Shown: positions 13,780 through 27,534 of the stretch, piece by piece
How positions within the stretch are numbered: position 1 is the first letter of the stretch
How the letters are laid out: every line of letters starts with the position of its first letter
Assembly (NCBI GenBank): GCA_943704425.1
Contig: CALSCP010001986.1
Coordinates: 1 to 64,000, forward strand
Direction: 5' to 3'
Length of the DNA: 64,000 bases
Origin: Ministeria vibrans ATCC 50519
Taxonomy: Eukaryota; Protista; Filasterea
The notes under the pieces: model-generated
Seen by the model: the letters and a program-made list of their open reading frames with translations, nothing else
Databases searched by the model: none
What the model was told of the DNA's origin: nothing
Translations under genes and position numbers: made by a program

Positions 13780-16700
13780 TTAAAAGTCATCGAGACGATC
13801 GACGAGGCGCGAACGCGAGAGGAGTCCACTCTTCTCGGTGATATGGTCATCGGCTTCGTCCATACCAGGTGCATCCACACCTGCAATGGCCTCGGCCACA
13901 GCCTGACGCACCACCTGCTGCGTCACGACCAAGTGTGATTGGTGCGAGCGACGGACTGCAACAAGAACGCACAGTAGGAGAGTGGCACACAACACAATAG
14001 CAACAATGTTGTTGGTCGACAGGAATCCGGTCGAGCCCGACAGTGGCGATAGTGCACTCACAGGCTCGTGGTTCTCGCTCCAGACCACACGCACAGGCGA
14101 CGACTGGTCGGCGTGTGCCAGCCACTCTGTCTCTGCCAAAAGTGTGCGCTCTGGCGTCACCTCGGTGCTGTTGTTGTCTGCCCAGAGCGTCTCATAAAGA
14201 CGCGCGACAAGGGATGCCGCCGACACTCGGTCGTTGCCATGGATTGCAATGGTCAGGTCTGGGTAGCCACTATTGTCCGAGTCGACCTCGACCTGGAAGT
14301 GACGGTGGTCCACTTGAAGCAGACGCACCAGTTCGCTCTCGACGGCAAGCGCACATCGCTCACGCGCCGCCGTTGCGTCATTGGCATCGAGTAGCGCCAA
14401 ACGACGACGCAGTTTGATGTGCTGCACACTGGCACGTACTGTCGCCAGGGTCACTCCCACCATGTCAAACTCCCAGTGCATGCTAGTGGGCATGGCGTTG
14501 CCCGCGACATCCTTGATGTCATACACCGTCATGCGCACCGCCGCACCCTCAACCTTCGCCCAGGGCACAGCCGCCCCAAACTCTACCAGCACACTGCGGC
14601 CCTGGCACACCACCAGCAGTTCGTTGGCGCCGGTCGATTTCCATTTGTATGTGGCACCCGCAATGGTCGACGCGGCCGTCACCGTAAACAAATAGGGAGT
14701 GCGGCAGTCGATAGGCTCGTCAAAAGTGATGCTCACACTCTTGCCAGGACTGTACTTGCCGTCGGCCGGCTCGGCAAAGTGACCAAAGACGCGTGGAGCC
14801 TGGCGGTCAATGGTGCCGCGCACGACGTGCGACGACTGCTCGTTGATGCCTGGCGGCGGCTGAGCCATGTTGGCCGGCTTGCACAGGGTGCGCAGACGCA
14901 GGTCGTAGGTACCGTCGGGAATGCTCGCCACGTCCCAGTACACCGTGGCATAGCCAAACATGGTCTGGAGCGACGCAAGTCCTCCCTCAACCGGCAGCTC
15001 CGCCGTCTCGTCAGCCATGATCATCGTCGCGGGACTCCACAGGGCACCGCCCACCACGCGGTACTCGAGGACCACACTCGTAATGCGTGTGCCATCTGCC
15101 GTCCACGACTGCTCCACCACGTTCTTGTTGAGCGCCACCACGCGCAACTGGTTCTTGTGCTTGTTCTGCCAGTCTCCCTTCTCCGCCGTGTGCGTGTTCA
15201 CCGTGAACGTGNNNNNNNCGTCCACGACTGCTCCACCACGTTCTTGTTGAGCGCCACCACGCGCAACTGGTTCTTGTGCTTGTTCTGCCAGTCTCCCTTC
15301 TCCGCCGTGTGCGTGTTCACCGTGAACGTGTTCATAGCATCCGCCGCGAGATCCTCGGCAAAATCCACGGGCGGACACGGCTCGAGAAACTCAACGGGAA
15401 TGTCAATGGTGGCGCCAATGACATCACGTCCGCTCGGCATGCCGGCGGGGTACTCGCAGTCGGAGACAAAGCGCAGCTTAAGCGGATCATACTTGTAGTG
15501 GCCCGGCGCACGGTGGACACTGATGGCCATGCGTACGCTGCCAGGCTCAAAGTCTTTCATGATGCGCGCTCCGCTGAACGTGTCGCCGTCAATCATGATG
15601 GCCAGATTGTCGCGGTTGTCGGCGCTCGGCACGCTCAGGCGGTAGTCAGAGCCATCATTGGTTGGCGAGTCGTTCACAAGGATCACCTCGTATATCGCCG
15701 GCTGGTCTGGCATGACGGGCCCCGGTGGCCACGACGCCAAGATAAGACGCACCTGCTCGCGTGGAACCGTGTTGGGCTCGTGCACACACATGGAGCGACC
15801 GCTGAGCGTGTAAAAGACTGGCGTGCCAAAGAGCGGATCGTAGAAGATGAGCACGTCAAACTGATCGTCAATGTCGGGATCGCCCAACGAGAAGGACACG
15901 GCATTGCTGTGCACCACGCCGCCCGTCGAGGACGAGCCATGCTCCACCATGAGACCAGTGGGAATCTCCAAGCCAATGGCAAGGCCAACACCGAGGGAGA
16001 ACTCAAAGCCCAGCTTGAGCGCCGGGAGAGAAATTTCGTGGGTGTACGCGGAGCTCTTGGTGTGTTGCTCTGAATTTTCACCGCTCGCCGTGTACGTGAT
16101 GGAGGAGCCACCGCCCGAAAAGGACACACCATTGTACTCGTTCAGAGGCGTCGCCTTGAACTCGGGCAAAGCATTGCGCTTCTCGCGTGCGTCGCGACGT
16201 CGCCATTTGATTGGCGTGTCCTCGGTCCATTCTTGTGGTTCGTCGCCCGCATGAGCATTCCACTCGTCGGGAGTGAGTCCGTTGCGCTCCGACGACAAGT
16301 CTGTCTCCGAGTCGCCATCAAACTCCTTAACGCCCGACTGAAGCTTGAGTGAGTTGATGGGTGGCAGACCTGTGTTGGACGAGCCGTACAGCTTCGAGTT
16401 TCGCTGCTTGAACACCTTGAACACCTCAATGTACTGACGCGTCACATAGTTGAAGTTCTTCAGGGCTGGCACACCAGTTGGAAGGACACCTCGACTCGAT
16501 GTTGCCGAGAAGACGGCATCGAGCGCAATGGCGTCGGGCTCGGTCGATTCGCTCAGCGAGTCGGGCGCCACCTTGAAACGCTCCACAAAATCGGGCCAGT
16601 CAGAACCCTTGACGCCCGCAATGTGATGCACGGCGGCATTGTACGCGAGCAGATTGGACCAGCCATTGACAGAATTGGCAAGTTTGACCATGGTGGCCAG

Positions 16701-19700
16701 CTTGCCTCCTTCGCGCACCTCGTAGGCGAGCTGCCTAAGCACATCGGGCAGCATGCGGTAACGAATGTCCTCGTCACTCTTCCACGCAAGCACCTTGTCA
16801 CCCTCTTGCGACAGTGCGACCTTGGGCGTCGCGACAACCGAACACGAGGCAGCGTCATACTTGATGATGAGCGAACGCGACAGTTTCACCGAAAGTGACG
16901 GGACAAGGAACATGTCGGAGGGACGGCCAGCGGAAGCCGGGTCGTCGCTGGTCGAGACGGAATACTCAAACGAGAACATGCGTTCCTTCTCCCAGTTGGC
17001 CGAAGGAATGCCCTGCGCCGTACTAAAGGTGTAGCCCAGGCTACCGTCACCCGTCTCCTCCGCGTCATCATCGTCCGCCGGCTTTGTTCCTTTGCCAGCG
17101 TTTACAGCGGCCGCGGCAGCGCCTCCAAGCGATAGCTCGCGTCGTTGTCGCTCCTCGTACTCCTCGTCCGTCTCCGCTTCGCGACGCCCCAGCCCTAGTT
17201 TCATCTTGATCGACGCGCCATTCTTGCACACCATGGCACCGAGACCAGCACAAAAGTCCACCTTGTTTTTGGAGGTGGTCGCCAAGCTCGCACCCACGCC
17301 AATGGAGCCGCCGAGACTGAGCGACGCACTTGTGGCCCACGCATGCGATTTGCCGCTTGCCACTTCGGTGACGCTGTTGCCGCCGGGAGGGTCGCGCACC
17401 ACCATGAGTGGGAGGTACTCGGGCAACTGGAGCGAGAAGAATGCGCTGAGCAGCACCTCGCCGAGAATAACCACGTCCACCTCGACATGGTTGATGCCAG
17501 GCAGCGTGTCCCAGCCGGGAGTGTTCAGGGTCGCATAGAAGGGACGTGTGTAGGGCTTCTCCGATGACATGACAGCCTCGTTGCGCTCGGGCGGGAGGGT
17601 ATCACCAGTCACCAGAACCACCGGTGGCTTCTCGCTGACAGGCAGAGGGTCCTGCACAGATACCGAGAGAACCGCATCGCAGCCGGGCGCATCACCGCAC
17701 GTGTCAATTGACACAGCAACAGGCGTGGCATCCGCCACTTGTTCGGCATTGACAGGAGTGACTTCACCGGTAGCCATATTGGCACTGGCAGCCGTGATCG
17801 CCGTGGTCGTTGCAAGCTTGTTCACAATCTTGAGCGTGCCCGGCACAAAGTGGCACACGTTGGTCGGGTCCGACTCGTCGCCAAAGACCTCGCGCGCCGA
17901 CACAGCCACTTTGGTCTGCTCGGGCGCCTCGCTGTTGTCAACGTTGCCAAGAATGGTAGGGAAGGTGCGCTCGACGGCAGCGCACGCGTCCTTGTTCGAC
18001 TGTGACGCACGCGCCGTGTCCAGTACCACGACAGACACATGCGGACGGGGGTGGTACTCAAAGCGAATGGCGCGCTCGCGTGACTCAATCTCGGCCGTGC
18101 TCAGTGCGTTGGTTGCCTCGTTGCTGTCGCTTTGCGGCACCGTTTCGATGGCGGCCGTAGGGAACTCGTCATTGTCGCAGTACAGCTGCACGCGAGTTTT
18201 CTCCTGAGGCACGTGGCCTTGCGCCAGTCCCGAACCCACCTGCGTCTCCTCCTGACGCTCGTCAAACTGACGCAAGTCAACATCGGCACGGATGCGCTGC
18301 TGAATGCGAGCAAAGTAGGGGGCGACCTCGGGTCGCTCGTACACCTTGTTCAACTTGATGTCAAAGAGCGCCGCGGGCACCGTGTGCACCTTGGTCACTT
18401 CGGTTTGCACCAACGCAAACGACGCGTCGGGTACGTCACAAGTAACCTTGGGCACGAAGATAATCTCGGCCGTGCCCAAGTCAATGTTGCACTGGCGCAC
18501 TCCGCCGGCCACAGTAATCTCAATCGTCTCCGACGTCTTGTCATCAAAGTCGACGCTGGTCAGGCCCGTCTCGGGCACGATCATGTAGGGTTGCTTTTGC
18601 GACGGCGTGTTCGTACACGCAGGGTAGTTGGCCATGGTGACCGACGTCGACGGCGACACCGCGGCTGCGTCGAGCTCGAGCACGTGCATGCCAAACGTGG
18701 CGACAAACTCAACGGTGAGCCCAATGGGCACGTGCAAGGTGTACGCTCCCGTGGACGAGGTCGTCTCGCACACCACCTTGTTGCCCGTGTACCAATCGTA
18801 GGCACACACCTCAGCCTTGGGCACGGCGCACTTGGGCACGCGTGTCGTGACTGGCGTGGGTGGTTCGCGCCAACACTGACGTTGCGTCTTGTCCTTGCCC
18901 ATCATGTACGTGCGACTGCACGCCGATGTGTAGCCAGTGTCGTAGCTAATGCCAAAGACGTCGCCCGTAGCGATACTGCGCCACATTGTACACGTGCGCG
19001 TCGTTGTCCACGTCCACCATTCGCAATCGGAGCGCGCGTCGCACTTTTCGGCGCATGTCTGAAGCGTGACTGAAGTGAGTGACTCGAGCGTGCCCCCTGA
19101 ATTGCCGTAGGTGTACACGGCATTTTCATGAATGTAAGACTTCTCGCACTGCTCACCGGTGCGTCCCGGTGGACACTGGGGCACCAAGGGAGGTGTCATA
19201 CTTGCGAGCGTCACGCGAATACCCGTTGTGGCCAAACCACCAACGCCATCGTCGTACAACAACTTGGTGGGGGCCTTGTTGAACATGTGGCACAAAGACG
19301 AGCGATGAGTCCAGGCGGCACAATCCTTCTGCACGTCACAAAGAAGCGCACACGCATGCGGACTGAGCGCAAGACGCTCTTGAAAGAGCGAGCCAGCTGC
19401 AATGGTGGCGCGCGTCGTCACACGTTCCATCAGCTCGGGCGTCGCTTCCTCGCACCAGCGCTCGCGCACACGATAATCGTCCGTCTTGAGAGCCAATTCT
19501 TGTGACAGCAGCCAGCGACGACTGCAGCCCGACGCGGCGTTGGCATGAGGAATCAGTTGAATGGCCGTGTTGCCCTCGGTCTTCCATAGATCCGTCTGTT
19601 TCACACTGTAATGGCGACACACCGAGGCGACACCACTGCCCACCTCACTCAGAAAGCTCCAGCCCATACAGTCGGTGGCTCGCTCACACGAACTCGAGCA

Positions 19701-22700
19701 AAATTCGGCGGTAACAACCTTGTGACTCAAAATGGTTGCGCCACTCGAGCGCCAGACAAGACCCTCGCGAAGCAAAGACAGCTGACACGCTCGACCGCCA
19801 GCACCGTGCTCGCATGGCGCCTGCTTGCATTTGACGGCCGTGTTGCGCTGACTGCAGGCACTCACAAAGTCTGCAGCAACACAGTCACCACGCTCAACGA
19901 GCTCTCGACCACTTGGGTCGTAGCATCCCTTGCCTTCCGTTACGCTTACAACGCCATTGAGGTAGCCAAGAATACTGGTGACCTTGGGCGGCGATTGGGG
20001 CACGGACACCGTCGGATCCGTGCTCACAATCTCGCCAGAGTGGCTCAGTGCAAAAAACGAGTCACTGAGAGCCACAATAGAGCGTGCTGCAACGCCGAGC
20101 GTGTGCTCAATGTGCGGATTGAGACCCCACACGTACGTTTTACCATCGGAAGCGACAGCACCAAACGCATTCGGGGTCACCAGCACCTTGTCAATACCCT
20201 TGTTGAGGAGCTTTTGCAGGGTCGCTGAGACCTCACCACCCGAACTGCCGACGCCCCAGGCCACAACAGAGCCGTGCTCACTGAGCGCGGCAAACGCATG
20301 GTCTGTGGCATAGATAGAGGCAATGCCAGCATAGACCTTGGGCTGGATTTCGGCGGGAAGATCACCACCGCTCACAGCCGCACCCCACACGAAGACACGG
20401 CCGTCGTCACGCAGAGCAGCACAGGCACCGCGCGTCGCCACAATGTCCTTGATGTTACTCGATACAAAGCCGAGAACGGAGGAGGGAATGACCCCTCCGG
20501 AGGCGGACGGACCCGCCGCAACGACCTGGCCCGACATGTGTAGCGCACAAAACGCGTCTTTCGTGGCAACCACCTTCTTGTAGCCACTCGAGGGGGAGCC
20601 TGGCGGTAGCGTGGCAAAAGTGACACGTGCAGGACGCGCCAACAAACTCATGTCCTGAAGAGGCGACCAGGGCAACGCCGACATGTAGTCAATTTCGGCG
20701 ACCTCACGACGTCCAAATAATGAGGGAACGTAGGGCCAAAAACTGATACGACCGTCGCCAGTGAGCACCGCCAATGAGTTGTCTGCGGTGGCAACATGGA
20801 CCGGATCCAAGTTGTTCATAGGTAAGCTGGCCTGCATGCGGCCGGTCGTGGGCGACTTGACGTAGACGGTCAACGAGTTTTTGCTGTTAGCTTCGTCCTC
20901 GATGACGGCAATGTAATTCTCCCCCGTGTACACACCCAGCACCTTGAGGCCGTGTTTGGAGCCCATGCGAAGGTTTCCCCACGACTGGAAGCCACCGTCG
21001 TCGAGCACGGCCACGGAGTAGCCATAGCGAGGCGCGTCGTAAAGCGCGACGACGGGACGTCGGAAATGCTTTCGCTCGACAACACCGGAAGGTTTCACCA
21101 CGAATACCGAGCCATCGCCGTTGAGCACGGCACAGTGTTGCGCCAGACTAGAAATGGATACGGGCGCAGCAGTCTTGGAGCCCGGCACGTAGCTGGCAAG
21201 ATGTTGACTGATGGTGGCGGGCTTCTGAAAGAGCGGCTCGCCTGAGAGCTGCAAGGCGCATCGCTTGTGCTTCACATTGAAGTTCCATGCCTGGCACTTT
21301 TCGGTGTGGTCACAAACCTCGGCGCAAAGCGCCTCGCTCGTCACCTTGGTTTGCTCGACGGAAGCCTCGACCGCAACGGCACCTATATGACGCAGCTTGT
21401 CGCGGGCCTCGTGCGAGCACACCTTCTCGCCAAAGCGCTGCAAGCCGTAAGGGCTGCAGCCTGATGTAACACCCTCGCGGTACCAGAAAGGCTCCGCGGA
21501 GGACTTGGCGGAGGCTGTACTAATAAGGTAGCAACCGGTGGAACGGAACGACCACATGACCGCCCCTTTGGTGCTGAGGAGTGCGCACTCCATCCAGTCC
21601 TTCACCTGGATAGGACTTCCACCGTCCTTTGGCACGTAAAATGCCGGCTCGGCATCACGATGGAATACCTTGACGTTGCACTGGACGCCCGCATACCCAG
21701 GAGGACATTGTTCGCAGTCGCGTTGATCGCTCACCCAAGCTGTGGCGGAGCAGCTCGAGACAGCGTCAGCCACGTGCGATTGGCGCTTTGCCCAAGTGGT
21801 CACCTTTGTGAAGAGCGCACACGGGTACATTTTGGCGTAGCATGAGGGACAGTAAGACCAGGCGGTACATTCGGCACCGGCCTTTGTACAAAGCGACGCA
21901 CAGGCGTCGGCTGAAGCAGCGGGTGCGCGCAAGTCGGCGAGTGTTGGTGAAGTGGGAACGAGTGCTGTGGAGAGCATACGACGGGTCGAGGTACACGAAG
22001 GCAAGCCCATCAGGCCGGGGGGGCAGGCAGCCTGTTCGCGGCACACGGACGCGTGCTCGGGCTTTTGCGCAAACGTGAAAGAGCACCCACTGAAGGCGCC
22101 CTTGGCGTAGCGAATGCCGCCAGGATTGGTCCAGACCGAGTCAATTTGAAGGTCGCAGGTGCTTGGCGGCGAAAAGCTCCAGGCGGTACAGTCTGATTTG
22201 TCCTTGCACAAGATTCTACACGCCTTCGCGGAGGTAGCGGTCGTTTTTGTGCTCGGGCTGCCCGAGTAGACGGTGTTCTCATGCATGATGACTGTTGTGC
22301 AGTCGATACCGGTCCAACCGGGCACACATCCCTTTTGCTTGCACACACCCAACTTGTTGGTGGCCGAACACGCCGACGAAGAACCAAGCTCAAACACGGG
22401 AGTGAGCTTATCGCTCACCTGAAGACGACAGCGGTAGGGCGAGAGCGTTGCCTTGGCAAGGAAGGTCCAGCCAAAACAGGCCGCAATGGTACCGCACTCC
22501 TTCGCGCATGCGTCGAGAGTGGTAGCGTCGCTTGAGACAAACTCGGCGCCCACATAGGCAGTGTCCGCGTGAAAAAGAGGAACGGGTGCGGCGCGTCGTT
22601 GCGTGCTGAGAGCACGGCGATGGTCCAGAGCGGAACGCATCAAGTCTGACATGACGGGCGTCGTTGACGAAGAAGAGGCGGAGTAGATTTCGTCGATGCT

Positions 22701-23377
22701 GTGCTGCAACGACGAAGCCGGATCGGGCAGGGCGAAAATGGAGTGAGACGAGGTTTCGCCGTGCGACGAAGATGCCACGGGCACCGGCTCGTCGTCAACA
22801 CTACGACGGCCCGTCGTCGGTCCCACGCCGTAAACTGCCATGGGAATCTTGACGCTGCCCTGCACAGGAGCGGTGGTTGCATCAAGAAATTCCAAGCGAT
22901 GCTCAAAGTTGAGATGCTCCGCTTCAATCTTCAAAGTGCATTACAATATTTTTTTAGACTTTTTTGTTTTCCTTGTTTTGTTTTTCTTCTTACCAGTCTA
23001 GAGTTACACACGGAGCCGTCCTTGCACTTAAAAATGTGATCAATTCCTTGGGTGTTCTTCAACGCGGTGACAGTAACAATGTAATTTTCGTTGGTGAGAC
23101 AGGGCAGATTGATGTGAAAAAAGGTTTGGCCGAGTTTGTCCGTTGCCAAAGCGGCCGTGCCCGAAGGGATGCCCGAGGTGCCACAAGTGACGTCCTCAAT
23201 CTTCCATGCAATGCTAACACCTTCGACAGGATGTTCACCCTTGAGGGTGATGACATCAATAAAAATCTTCGAATCGAAGTGAATAGTCCACGGCGAGCAG
23301 CTGAGAAGGAGGAAAAACAAACAAAAAATGAGTGAGTGAGCGAGTGAGTGAGGTGTATGGTGTGTGTGCGTCTTTGT

Positions 23378-23437
<60 letters not shown>

Positions 23438-24732
23438 CACTCGTAAAATCATTCACACATGTGTCCTTACACTTCTTTTGACTGATAGTTAGACGACGTT
23501 CCCGTCACACAATAATGGTACTCACGGCCGAGAACAAGCTCACTAGCAACGAGGTTGTCGTGGACATCACTCGGGGTCATGACGTCGCTGCATACTGACT
23601 GAGGCACTTCGATAGGCTTGGCAAAGCGTTGACTCTGGCCGGCGAGGGTGGCACGACGCACAAACTCGTAGGAGACGGCACACTTGGAGTTGACGAGCCA
23701 TTTGAAGTAGATGAAGCCACCCTTTTGACGAGGCTGGAACGAGTGAGCGCCATCGTCAATCTCGTCGGGAGTGAGTGAGATACGGTAGCGCGGATTGCGA
23801 CGGTTGCACAGACGATCTTCGGTGGAACATCCGCAAGGTATAGTCACAAACAGCTAAAAAATTATTATTATTAAATTAATAAAATTAATCATTGCTGAGA
23901 TGCATACGTTGACGGCATTTTGGTAGTTGACATGGAACTGTTCACCAGGATAGAGAACGCCACCAATGATGTCAAGGTTGGCAGAGGTAGTGCCGCCAAG
24001 AATCAGCGTGTTGGTCTGTGTGGTGGAAGTGCCCTCCTAACAACACAACACGGTTTTTACAGGGGGATTCAGTCCAAGAAGTAGGTATTACCTGGTGGCG
24101 ACCAATCTTTTCGGGAGTCACTTTCCATGTGCCGGGATTGGTGGTGATGACACTTGCGATGATGGAGCCACCGGACGGGTCGCACTTAAAAACGACATCA
24201 GCCACGTAGCACCCAACGGACGAGACCTGCGAAGAAAGACGAGGTCAGGGGAAAAAGAACGTTTGACTGCATCAATAATAATTAATAGAGTGTACAGTGC
24301 CATCTCTGCAGACACAAGCAGTTCTGGCGTTGTTGGCCCGCCGAGCGAGCGTCGGGTGACATCCAAGACAGTCCTAAGAGAAGGGAACACAGTTTGATTG
24401 CGTGAGGCATGCGACGGGCAAGAAAAAAGCGAGCTTACAGTGCCTCCTCTGCTAGGCTGGTACTTGAACGCAGGACATATGGGGCAGCTATGCATAGCGT
24501 AGTTGCTGGCATACTTGCCCTTGGCACACCTTTTACATTTGGTCTGCTGGAGCATGTCCTGATAATAGCCGGGTGTGCATCGTTGTTGGGCCTGCACGGG
24601 TATAATCAATCACGGATGAGACACACACTCACCACAAAGAACTCCATCACAATGACACCCACCACCACCACACACCAGAAAGTCACACACACACCCACCG
24701 CCACCACACACACAAACACACACACACACACG

Positions 24733-24780
<48 letters not shown>

Positions 24781-27048
24781 ACACACACACACACACACAA
24801 TACACACGCACACACACGATTTCACATGATACAAAACATACCACGGCACCGGCGCAGTAGTGCCCAAGAGAACAGCGTGTAGCGTCGTTGTCGCATTGAT
24901 TGCTACTGTAGCCTGTTGCGTAGCCGGGCGAGCAGTCGCTGCATGTCGTACTGCCGCGCGCCGACTGATACTTGCCAGGAGTACAGTTAATACATGTTGA
25001 CTATCATAGAGAGAAAGGGGAGAGAAAGAAAAAAACGGACAATGAGAGAATTAGAAGAAGAGTTGAGAAGCTAGTGCAATATTGTACTTGGCGGCGCTCG
25101 TTTTGGTATTTCCCTGGCACACACAGCTCTGAGGCCTATATGCAACAGACGGAGAGTGAAAAAGAAAGAGAACGACGCAACAGAGATGAGATGAATTACA
25201 CAACAAAAAAAATAAACAAAAACACAAACGACGTACCACTGCACCGGGACACATTGAGCCGGCGGGACACTCGTTTTGGCGCTGGTCACAGCGGGTGGCG
25301 CGCTGATCTGAGAAGAAGCCGGACGGGCAGTTGTGGCAGCTACCGGATTCTGCGCTCCCCTGATACTTTCCGGCCGGACAGTCGATACAGGCGGATCGAC
25401 CCGCAGGCGCATACTTGCCAGCGACACAGTTAGTGCACACCGTCGCCGCAGTCGACGAAAAACGACCAGTTTCACATGATCTGCAGTGAAATTGCATCTC
25501 AGTTGCCGCATATCTTCCTCCAGGGCAATCTAACAGAAAACAGGGTGTTTAGAAGCGTGCTGACAAAAGAGACAGGAGAGAAATTAATCAAAGTGATAGA
25601 GAGAAAGAGAGGAGGGGGAAAGAAGCAAAGTGATAGAAAGAAAGTGATAGGGACAAAGCGAGAGAAGTGACATTGAATGAAGTGATAGAGAGACGAGGGT
25701 AACAAATTGATAAACGAGCAATCACATTAGGCGGATCATTGACATTTCCTTCGCATACCGAAGCAATAGTGACGGGTCTTGTAGGGCTGGTGCTTTCCCG
25801 GCTCACATATGTGCCTTCCCTTGTTAACGCAAAAGTGTCCTGCATTACACGGATCACAATATGTGTTTTTCCTACGAGAGCCAGAGTGAAAAAGGGGAAT
25901 GGTCCGTTTTGCAGCAATATTCTTCTTACGACCAACAAACCGAGTTAGCGCATTTTTTGACTTCAAAATAACCATTGCCACAGCGGCGGTGACGAACGAG
26001 AGTCGCTTCACGTCTTTCGCTTCCCTGATCGTTCAACGACGTCTCGCAGAGCTCTCCAAGAAAGCCGGGTGTGCAGAGACATTGGACGGAGTGGGCTGTT
26101 CTGTAGTGCTGTTTGGTTGATGTGACGCAGGTGCCGCCGTTCTTGCACAAATTAGGCGCACACTTGTGTGTCTCAGGAGCGGATCGACAGTCGAGACGAA
26201 CTTTTACATCTCCAATGCTCCACGCTAAAGACAATAAAAATAATCATGAAGAAGTGGAATGAAATTTGAAGTGGCGTACTTGGAAGTTCGCTGATACTCA
26301 GTGTTTCCCAACGCAAACGAAGCAGCAGCGGTGTGTCACTCGAAGGAATCGGATACCACTCGAGGTGATCAGTAAAGCCATCGCTGGGCGCGACCGAAGT
26401 CCAGTAGGAGGCGACGGGAGTCTTGCTCTCACGGCTGGAAAGGTACTCAGCCAGTAGAATGCCACCTGAGCCCTTTGTGGAGAAGGTGAGGCGGGCGGAG
26501 CGGTGTCCGTCGCTCGAGACCGTCTCAAACGGAGCCATAATGACAACGGCTGCGTGGTCTGGGTCGGGGCGCAGAACGGGTTCGCTGAAAAGCTCGTCGG
26601 ACAGAAGCTAAAGAAAAAGATAACAAAGGTTCCGAATTTGCGGCAGAAAAGAAAGAGTGAGAGGGAGAGGGCGAGAAAGGGGTGAAGTGAACAAAAGGTG
26701 GCTTCGGTACGGACACTTGAGAGGGGTGTTTTCGCCGTTGGGGTTTAGAATTTCATGAGATAAAAAAATTATTGAGAAAATAAAAACGGATGAGACAAAA
26801 AAAAACGTAAAAACAGAGGTTGTAAGAGAAGCAGGGGGTTCCCGCTGGGAGGTGAGGAGTTGTACCTGAACAGTGTTGTTGTGGAGGCGAGCGCCATTGA
26901 GAAAGGTGGTCGCCCAGCGCGACGGAGGACCGTTGGCACTGAAGTGTTCGTGGACCATGTCAACACTGGCACAGGGAACGCTGTGCGCCGTCGCGAACGA
27001 GACGAACACTACCAGCGCAACAACCGCGTGGAGCGAGTGTGCAGCCAT
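13780..27048 (-). CDS. Giant (>3,500 aa) type I membrane mosaic protein: signal peptide, beta-rich N-domain, EGF, GCC2/GCC3-type Cys repeats, beta-sandwich domains, 8 PAN/apple-like modules, RCC1-like repeats, DPPG-motif module, Ig-like domains, TM
   Basis: ATG at 27048 starts a signal peptide (MAAHSLHAVVALVVFVSFATAHS). The first exons 27048-26866, 26607-26280 and 26224-25930 splice in frame, and further GT-AG exons follow down to ~22990. The final ~9-kb exon is split only by the N gap at 15212-15218. TM helix IVAIVLCATLLLCVLVAV lies near 13950-14007. Confidence 0.85.
15100..15330. other. Scaffold join artefact: 112-bp exact duplication flanking a 7-N gap
   Basis: 15100-15211 is identical to 15219-15330. 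Removing 119 nt fuses ORF 15198-22934 and ORF 13780-15378 in frame. Confidence 0.95.
23361..23436. repeat. Intronic (GT)n microsatellite
   Basis: Direct inspection. Confidence 0.95.
24680..24818. repeat. Intronic (CA)n microsatellite
   Basis: Direct inspection. Confidence 0.95.
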
Positions 27049-27534
27049 CGACAAAAGAAAATGAGTTCGATTGTGCGGTGTTTGAGTCGATTCGTTCTTT
27101 TTTTGTCAGTAAAAAAAAAAAAAAAAAAAAAAAGAAGAGAAAAAAAAAGAAAAAAGAAGAAGGTAAATTGTTGATGGACAATCGTTCAGTTTGCTCTCTC
27201 TCGCCCGACGATTCGTCGCTTTCTTCTTAGATCCAGTTACCTGAACCTTTTATAGTCCAATCTGCGCCGAACACCAGGGCAACCGCGCACCGGGTCAGTG
27301 CGAATTCAGCTGTGCTTGCAAAACACAAAGTGCAAACACACGGTCAAAAATCAATCTTTTTTTGGGACGTCATACCAAAAAAGCCCACGCTCATCCCACG
27401 CCCCAAATAAGCCATTAATCACGATTCAAATCATTTTGGTGAAGACTCCTACGTCCATCTAGCACTTGTGTGGTCATCCATTCGTCGCTGGTGTTGATAC
27501 CTGGCCGATACGACTTGTTGTCCACCCACTATTA

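Follow-up and report, generated by a model that had tools for sequence, protein, structure and literature searches.

The giant gene and the RDPPG module

The stretch of DNA analyzed here (the window) comprises 64,000 nucleotides (nt) of contig CALSCP010001986.1 from the filasterean protist Ministeria vibrans ATCC 50519, and its minus strand carries a giant gene for a putative anchored surface protein; within this protein lies a run of conserved motifs that is here named the RDPPG module. The module (residues 1-793, window:15222-17600:-; all coordinates are window positions) is a real, new and widespread extracellular domain family: an exhaustive HMMER search recovers 1167 cluster representatives with E<=1e-3, and 563 of them reach E<=1e-10. 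Every motif of the ordered set listed in the original prediction, which was made from the DNA letters without database searches, is located in the computed translation, in the same order, at the positions indicated and on the minus strand (Table 1); the set is collinear with homologues that reach E values of 1e-65 outside this species, which is far beyond chance.

By translation the gene is one very long frame, 22934..15198 plus 15378..13780, and its sole interruption is a 7-N gap at 15212-15218. The duplicated 119 nt described in the original prediction resolves into these 7 N and an exact 112-nt duplicate; the gap and the duplicate are a scaffolding artefact and the source of the apparent frameshift. 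The translations read are window:15222-22934:- and window:13780-15378:-, and both pieces were searched separately. As the window stands, the artefact makes one gene look like two open reading frames (ORFs), and gene callers will mis-model it.

The domain order of the protein is PAN/apple repeats and an RCC1-like N-terminal part, the RDPPG module, immunoglobulin (Ig)-like domains, a hydrophobic anchor segment, and a short tail; in the N-terminal half the Pfam matches are PAN_4 (3.4e-22), PAN_1 (2.4e-16) and RCC1-like (1.6e-15). The hydrophobic segment is read from its sequence as a putative transmembrane anchor, and the transmembrane stalk behind putative binding domains that had been proposed finds its counterpart in this segment, which lies behind the PAN and RCC1-like domains. 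Upstream exons of the same gene occupy 22931-27054 on the minus strand, and the introns between them carry long (CA)n/(TG)n microsatellites; judged by translation only, these exons would include a signal-peptide-like start near 27054, one EGF-like exon, repeats rich in Cys, and a small beta-sandwich-like exon (22931-23452). By its composition, introns and domain content the contig is eukaryotic, and it is not human.

Table 1. Positions in the window of the giant gene, the parts of its RDPPG module and the associated motifs, in the order of translation
Feature	Position	Strand	Basis or content
Large terminal exon(s) of the giant gene	13780..22934	-	ORFs 15198..22934 and 13780..15378; a single frame once the gap artefact is discounted
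Block 1 (residues 1-140)	17181..17600	-	Beta strands, near-invariant RDPPG..S (17373-17411), hairpin 1; phmmer block q3-150 common to relatives
PLMVVRDPPGGNS	17373-17411	-	Translation
First Ser/Thr/Gly stretch	17271-17339	-	Translation
Cys-flanked Gly/hydrophobic loop C117..C125 (CAGLGAMVC) of hairpin 1	17226..17252	-	Alignment
Acidic low-complexity insert (residues 141-200)	17001..17180	-	Predicted disordered, pLDDT 30-37; outside the phmmer blocks common to relatives
Block 2 (residues 201-330)	16611..17000	-	Strands 201-216 and 230-249 around TS..G..SD.FL; C253; helical hairpin 276-296/301-329
YSVSTSDDP	16938-16964	-	Translation
SDMFL	16905-16919	-	Translation
Mostly helical lineage-specific insert (residues 331-485)	16146..16610	-	Holds WRRRDAREKR; pLDDT mostly 45-85
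WRRRDAREKR	16176-16205	-	Translation
Furin-like REKR	16176-16187	-	Within WRRRDAREKR, helical insert
Block 3 (residues 486-612), the most conserved part	15765..16145	-	FSGGG, hairpin 2, acidic DPDIDD..F, FGTPVF, conserved G601, S603, C605, E608, T611
VSFSGGG	16107-16127	-	Translation
Second amphipathic stretch	15924-16040	-	Translation
FSLGDPDIDDQFDV	15852-15893	-	Translation
FGTPVF..CVHEP	15774-15830	-	Translation
Ig-like domain directly after the core (residues 615-741)	15378..15758	-	Confident AlphaFold2 prediction
Assembly-gap artefact	15100..15330	.	7 N (15212-15218) between an exact 112-nt direct repeat, 15100-15211 = 15219-15330
Big_5-type bacterial Ig-like domain	14467..14808	-	Near-threshold Pfam PF13205 match; holds IDRQAPRVFG .. 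SITFDEPIDC
IDRQAPRVFG	14782-14811	-	Translation
SITFDEPIDC	14704-14733	-	Translation
Putative C-terminal hydrophobic membrane-anchor segment	13954..14007	-	Followed by RR and a 58-residue tail; stop codon 13780-13782; relatives P0020 and P0052 end alike

Conservation of the core

The 150 listed representatives have E values from 3e-65 to 1e-20, and pairwise alignments with Bacteroidota proteins reach 7e-21 and 1e-15. Nearly all relatives display the same order of block 1 (3-150), block 2 (196-330) and block 3 with its Ig-like domain (480-793), with a further Ig-like block downstream; within block 3 the run of motifs across relatives is FSGGG, hairpin 2, D.D.GD.F, YGTPVF and S.C..E, then the Ig-like domain. 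The core spans ~370 residues in bacteria versus ~610 in the window protein, the excess being due to two lineage-specific inserts (141-200 and 331-485). Across 60 bacterial loci core length is uniform (358-397 residues) and mean column identity is 44%; the linker at the position of the 331-485 insert measures 178 residues in the window protein, 21 in most bacterial-type members, and 35-231 in eukaryote-type members. The module occurs once per protein, with no tandem copies, and Ig-like and Big_5-type domains always come after its core.

The residues that are near-invariant family-wide are D70, P71, P72, G73, S76, G119, T217, D229, C253, P285, W314, F494, L572, D574, D579 and F581, of which P285 and W314 lie in the helical hairpin of block 2, together with G601, S603, C605, E608 and T611 at the C-terminal end of the core. 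All of those tested are retained in the window protein (DPPG..S, T217, D229, C253, W314, F494, D574, D579, G601, S603, C605, E608). D70, P71, P72, G73 and S76 are kept in at least 90% of the family, as are D574 and D579; the 60 bacterial cores show no variation at P48 or G50 and keep D47 and P49 in at least 90%. C253 is conserved in 61 of 63 sequences and C605 in 57 of 59.

No model in Pfam, NCBIfam or PHROGs matches the core when module residues 1-793 and trimmed bacterial cores are scanned, and the PDB sequence set contains no significant relative of the module by single sequence, by the mixed A1 profile or by a bacterial-only profile; a literature search found no paper on the family. More than 1000 sequence clusters with a highly conserved extracellular core of ~370 residues thus lie outside domain databases and solved structures. 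With the module defined, a constant element could be annotated in many of the largest cargo proteins of type IX secretion, as well as in a protist surface multigene family.

Carrier proteins

The carriers, secreted or located at the surface, are multidomain giants of roughly 1,300-7,800 residues in which the module sits mid-chain in the company of variable binding domains (PAN, EGF, RCC1-like, LamG, C-type lectin, BACON); such a domain make-up is usual for giant adhesin-type surface proteins. Protist carriers end in a C-terminal membrane-anchor segment, and bacterial carriers in a tail for secretion by the type IX system (T9SS); the bacterial members carry LamG, CarboxypepD_reg, BACON and Por_Secre_tail domains. 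The resemblance to large LamG-associated proteins of Bacteroidota, noted in the original prediction, is borne out by homology: the homologues are giant LamG/T9SS proteins of Bacteroidota and allied phyla.

These giants, which belong to the Fibrobacterota-Chlorobiota-Bacteroidota (FCB) group and include a LamG-like jellyroll protein of Tenacibaculum maritimum (P0007), a Sphingobacteriales protein (P0002), and the Emticicia and Lacihabitans loci (L057, L049), are true homologues. They share RDPPG, TS..G..GD, FS.G, the amphipathic hairpin, D.D.GD.F, YGTPVF and S.C..E in the same order with an Ig-like domain after; however, their core is compact (~368 aa), with neither the acidic nor the helical insert and with no Cys-flanked loop, they bear a T9SS tail instead of an anchor segment, and they fall on the opposite side of the tree. 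Eukaryote-type members (PTSG_07019 and proteins of Barroeca monosierra, Salpingoeca infusionum, Paulinella micropora and Edaphochlamys debaryana) belong to the same clade or side of the tree as the window protein, and the nearest relatives have 33-36% identity to it over the three blocks. In this group the Cys loop is the rule, and both complete C-termini that were checked (P0020, P0052) finish with a hydrophobic anchor segment; at the N-terminus the binding domains are not those of the window protein, and no paper that mentions PTSG_07019 was found in the literature search.

Among individual bacterial carriers, a Cyclobacteriaceae genome encodes the module with five thrombospondin type 3 repeats and a T9SS tail (L025:5794-11016:+), and Lacihabitans encodes it with a PPC domain and a '3-coathanger stack' C-terminal domain (L049:4441-10386:+); no neighbour genes are common to these two loci. 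Short entries examined as candidate standalone small versions of the module (P0036, P0032, P0081, P0174) are gene fragments.

Distribution and origin

A word-based search returns one close relative, then giant Bacteroidota proteins with LamG domains and type IX secretion tails, and also a green-algal protein. The named eukaryotic members come from Salpingoeca rosetta (PTSG_07019, P0016), B. monosierra, S. infusionum, P. micropora and E. debaryana. A scan of reference genomes with the bacterial-type motif yields 69 loci, none from outside the FCB group, a few records being titled only "bacterium"; the taxa named are Bacteroidota, Fibrobacterota, Chlorobiota/Ignavibacteria, Calditrichota, KSB1, Latescibacterota, Marinimicrobia, Eisenbacteria, Balneolales and Rhodothermales. 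The family reaches across several supergroups of eukaryotes and at least ten named bacterial lineages of the FCB group. One or two copies are present in each of three bacterial genomes checked; the genome of the window itself (29.7 Mb, 2860 contigs) has at least eight paralogous loci.

Trees were built on block 3 and the Ig domain and are unrooted. A FastTree phylogeny of 226 rows has a starred branch that separates every named eukaryote from every named bacterial locus; a quick IQ-TREE analysis of 57 rows gives the same split with a Shimodaira-Hasegawa-like approximate likelihood ratio (SH-aLRT) of 91, and places the window copy in a starred clade with choanoflagellates and Paulinella. The module is thus common to bacteria and eukaryotes, but the window gene is no recent import. 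The bacterial homologues foreseen in the original prediction are present as the FCB-group giants; of its horizontally acquired module, the commonality with bacteria stands, and a recent acquisition does not, as the window copy falls within the eukaryote clade and is one of at least eight paralogous loci in its own genome. A recent bacterial origin of the window gene is rejected by both trees. The deep split between bacteria and eukaryotes offers a clean case in which to study ancient exchange of surface modules between domains of life; neither its direction nor its date is readable from unrooted trees.

Predicted structure

The module was modeled twice by AlphaFold2: over all 793 residues with 55 sequences (predicted template modeling score, pTM, 0.65), and, because structure searches with the full model were dominated by the Ig-like domain, over residues 1-612 with 63 sequences (pTM 0.62). 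Both runs agree on topology, with only moderate model confidence. Strands of 16-25 residues are predicted at 77-95, 201-216, 230-249, 500-524 and 549-573, and the helical hairpin 276-296/301-329 is confident, with a predicted local distance difference test (pLDDT) score of 85-91. In block 1, hairpin 1 is formed by strands 77-95 and 111-138; hairpin 2 consists of strands 500-524 and 549-573 with an amphipathic, Gly-rich tip at 525-548. The two amphipathic stretches lie at or beside the tips of these hairpins, where pLDDT is <50, and the hairpin bases are confident; the helical region proposed to lie between the two Ser/Thr/Gly stretches is likewise predicted by AlphaFold2.

C117 and C125, which flank the loop of hairpin 1, are presumed to form a disulphide. 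The pattern C-x-G-(L/F)-G-x-hydrophobic-x-C is a signature of the eukaryote-type clade, found by a strict pattern in 32 of 45 members, and in several others the Cys-flanked loop is longer; at this point bacterial-type members keep G(L/F)G but not the two Cys. The Cys-flanked loop favours contact with a membrane or a partner.

The Ig-like parts of the protein are limited to residues 615-741 and a Big_5-like part downstream. Against PF13205 the window protein scores just under the cut-off (21.3 versus 23.6 bits, E 4.8e-4), over profile positions 1-103 of 105; Big_5 matches lie at the same place in 10 of 55 relatives, the best at 2.9e-9. For the core alone (residues 1-612), Foldseek finds nothing in the PDB at E<=1e-3, and the VIA wide search, the VIA second look and BFVD give no credible match, the BFVD rows being noise; the core is therefore something other than a chain of Ig or lectin domains, and it has no recognizable solved relative.

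The helical insert of the window protein holds the basic WRRRDAREKR site, from which release of the protein by a proprotein convertase had been proposed. Of 63 aligned relatives 1 has REKR, and the site falls within a variable, lineage-specific insert; it is thus no property of the module, nor does it occur in P0001, the paralog represented in that alignment. Furin activation is rejected as a family feature.

Possible functions of the module

Tentatively favoured among the readings considered is that the module acts as a non-lytic structural hub in adhesin-type giants, stabilized by a disulphide and probably by Ca2+; this is ranked slightly more likely than a pore-forming role, with self-processing at the Asp-Pro bond third and the remainder falling to something else, such as an enzyme or a glycan binder. 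In such a hub, the sheet of 16-25-residue strands would pack on the conserved helical hairpin and be held by a probable disulphide between C253 and C605; the acidic cluster (D574, D579) would probably bind Ca2+, and the whole would keep the binding domains in fixed geometry while its two flexible arms, the Gly/Ser/Thr-rich hairpins, touch adjacent copies or the surface of a partner. The size and collinearity of the family, the adhesin-type architecture of the carriers, the concordant AlphaFold2 topology, and the conservation of C253/C605 and D574/D579 are counted for it. Several observations weigh against the hub: conservation is much above that of ordinary spacer domains; polar near-invariant residues (D70, S76, T217, D229, D574, D579, S603, E608, T611) hint at chemistry or metal binding, not pure structure; the module is never in tandem, unlike usual stalk domains; the hairpin tips are amphipathic, Gly-rich and predicted with low confidence; and the hydrophobic Cys-flanked loop of eukaryote-type members suits membrane contact better than a passive role.

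The original prediction had instead pictured the amphipathic hairpins as stems like those of beta-pore-forming toxins, and part of this picture holds, as the stretches do lie at the tips of long predicted beta-hairpins. In this alternative, which is possible but doubtful, the hairpins and the eukaryotic Cys loop would leave the core at a target membrane to which the variable binding domains had directed the protein, and copies would form a beta-barrel pore or a disrupting patch, by analogy with lectin-fused aerolysin-type toxins and the membrane-anchored perforin-2. Hairpin 2 has the expected alternation of hydrophobic and polar residues, a Gly-rich turn and Ser/Thr-rich flanks in bacteria and eukaryotes, a feature of aerolysin and ETX-MTX2 toxins that is present in the window and in the family; its beta-moment is modest (median z 1.8 versus shuffles, 43% of sequences at z>2), and that of hairpin 1 is weakly conserved (z 1.5). 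Both hairpin tips are of low confidence (pLDDT <50) on confident bases. With the mixed A1 profile only four PDB sequences match at E<=10, and the top three are aerolysin-type pore-forming domains, LSLa at E 0.028 and Cry78Aa (7Y78/7Y79; PMC9363482) at E 0.06 and 0.14, all below significance; the bacterial-only profile retrieves no toxin from the PDB. Among named language-model clusters those of Aerolysin, ETX_MTX2 and monalysin come closest (scores 0.82-0.84, a lead only), weak Foldseek rows include the lysenin pore, proaerolysin and leukocidin, and CEL_III_C appears at E 0.004 in one relative. However, every toxin signal is below significance and all of them may reflect one composition of Ser/Thr alternation. 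Pfam toxin models reach at best E 1.3, in one of five cores, and neither PF01117 nor PF03318 matches the window module or 54 relatives at E<=0.1; hhalign gives 0.4% and 0.3% probability for the two family alignments against an ETX_MTX2 family match, a Bacteroidota protein that itself scores 32.3 bits versus Pfam's 22-bit cut-off. Structure comparison of the core does not recognize the aerolysin-type fold, and for MACPF/CDC there is no PF01823 match in the window module or relatives, with Astrotactin-2 only at Foldseek E 0.19 (prob 0.06).

A precedent for such an arrangement is SaroL-1, a toxin of choanoflagellates that joins a lectin to an aerolysin (PMC9468336). Like LSLa (1w3a), Cry78Aa (7y78) and SaroL-1, the carriers join binding domains to a beta-rich module with a Ser/Thr-flanked amphipathic hairpin, and the resemblance is weak by profile, language model and Foldseek, with no significant sequence, profile-profile or structural match; unlike these small soluble toxins, the RDPPG module has two hairpins and a helical hairpin and sits mid-chain in an anchored giant. 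This position, in proteins of up to several thousand residues tethered to their producer, is awkward for ring assembly. With bacterial homologues present and a core other than an Ig or lectin chain, the pore idea survives, and it is not positively supported. The broader proposal is of a new family of membrane-inserting beta-hairpin devices (pore-forming or fusion-loop-like) housed in anchored giants of the surface and common to bacteria with type IX secretion and to protists that are phagotrophic or algal; exchangeable binding domains would aim them at prey or competitors, which would be attacked on contact. This proposal is doubtful to the same degree; if the hairpin arms do insert into membranes, they would constitute a new class of pore-former or fusogen with an unusual tethered design. 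An ETX/MTX2-type toxin (E 1.7e-7) was found in 1 of 301 sampled Bacteroidota genomes (G254:C8, L084:1402-2253:-), and classical aerolysin-type toxins are therefore rare in the phylum that carries the RDPPG module.

The conserved DPPG motif suggests another, unlikely possibility, by which the near-invariant Asp-Pro of RDPPG would be cut autocatalytically, splitting the giant into two associated pieces or leaving an aspartyl anhydride able to react in covalent attachment. Giant surface proteins commonly contain autoproteolytic modules, and Asp-Pro self-cleavage is established in FrpC and in VWD domains, in the latter at a GDPH site. FrpC's self-processing module (SPM) is a Ca2+-dependent Asp-Pro clip-and-link module, the self-cleavage of which is established (PMC7078468). 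The RDPPG module likewise has a conserved extracellular Asp-Pro bond, kept family-wide and in the 60 bacterial cores to the extent given above, with conserved acidic residues nearby that could bind Ca2+; AlphaFold2 places RDPPG in a loop right after a strand. There is, however, no detectable similarity in sequence or fold to the FrpC module or the VWD domains in PDB sequence or structure searches, and an Asp-Pro in a tight turn can be purely structural. If the bond does self-cleave, self-processing modules would gain a new member in the RDPPG module, one that might be of use for protein ligation.

Far less probable is a role like that of the class II fusogens HAP2 and EFF-1, in which an elongated beta domain with a Cys-flanked tip loop, followed by an Ig-like domain and an anchor, would merge or dock membranes. 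For the core Foldseek ranks EFF-1 (E 0.018, prob 0.21) and class II glycoproteins of viruses highest, though not significantly, and the eukaryote-type loop C-x-G-x-G-x-h-x-C resembles a fusion loop; but the HAP2 match is tied with many unrelated Ig domains, and the three-domain class II fold of HAP2, EFF-1, viral E and the fusexins did not come up in the structure searches. Fusexins also lack the helical hairpin, the Ig domain and the anchor lie ~660 residues apart with further Ig-like domains in between, and the bacterial members are secreted cargo without an anchor or a Cys loop.

Paralogs in the Ministeria genome

The paralogs inspected have PAN and/or EGF domains together with an RCC1-like domain, as does the window gene. 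Several of them (contigs C1827, C833, C2288, C905; loci L002, L004, L006) contain an in-frame TAG within a gap of ~80 nt at module residue ~587; this gap is most likely a short intron that the window gene lacks. One paralog has counterparts at 99.4-99.9% identity among metagenome proteins (P0001, P0015 and P0165), and the species of the window therefore occurs in public metagenomes, although EukProt contains no species that is a close match; with P0164 included, these proteins, from ENA and JGI metagenomes, have 98.7-99.9% identity to paralog L002. The metagenome gene calls P0001/P0015 split exactly at the residue ~587 gap of the paralogs.

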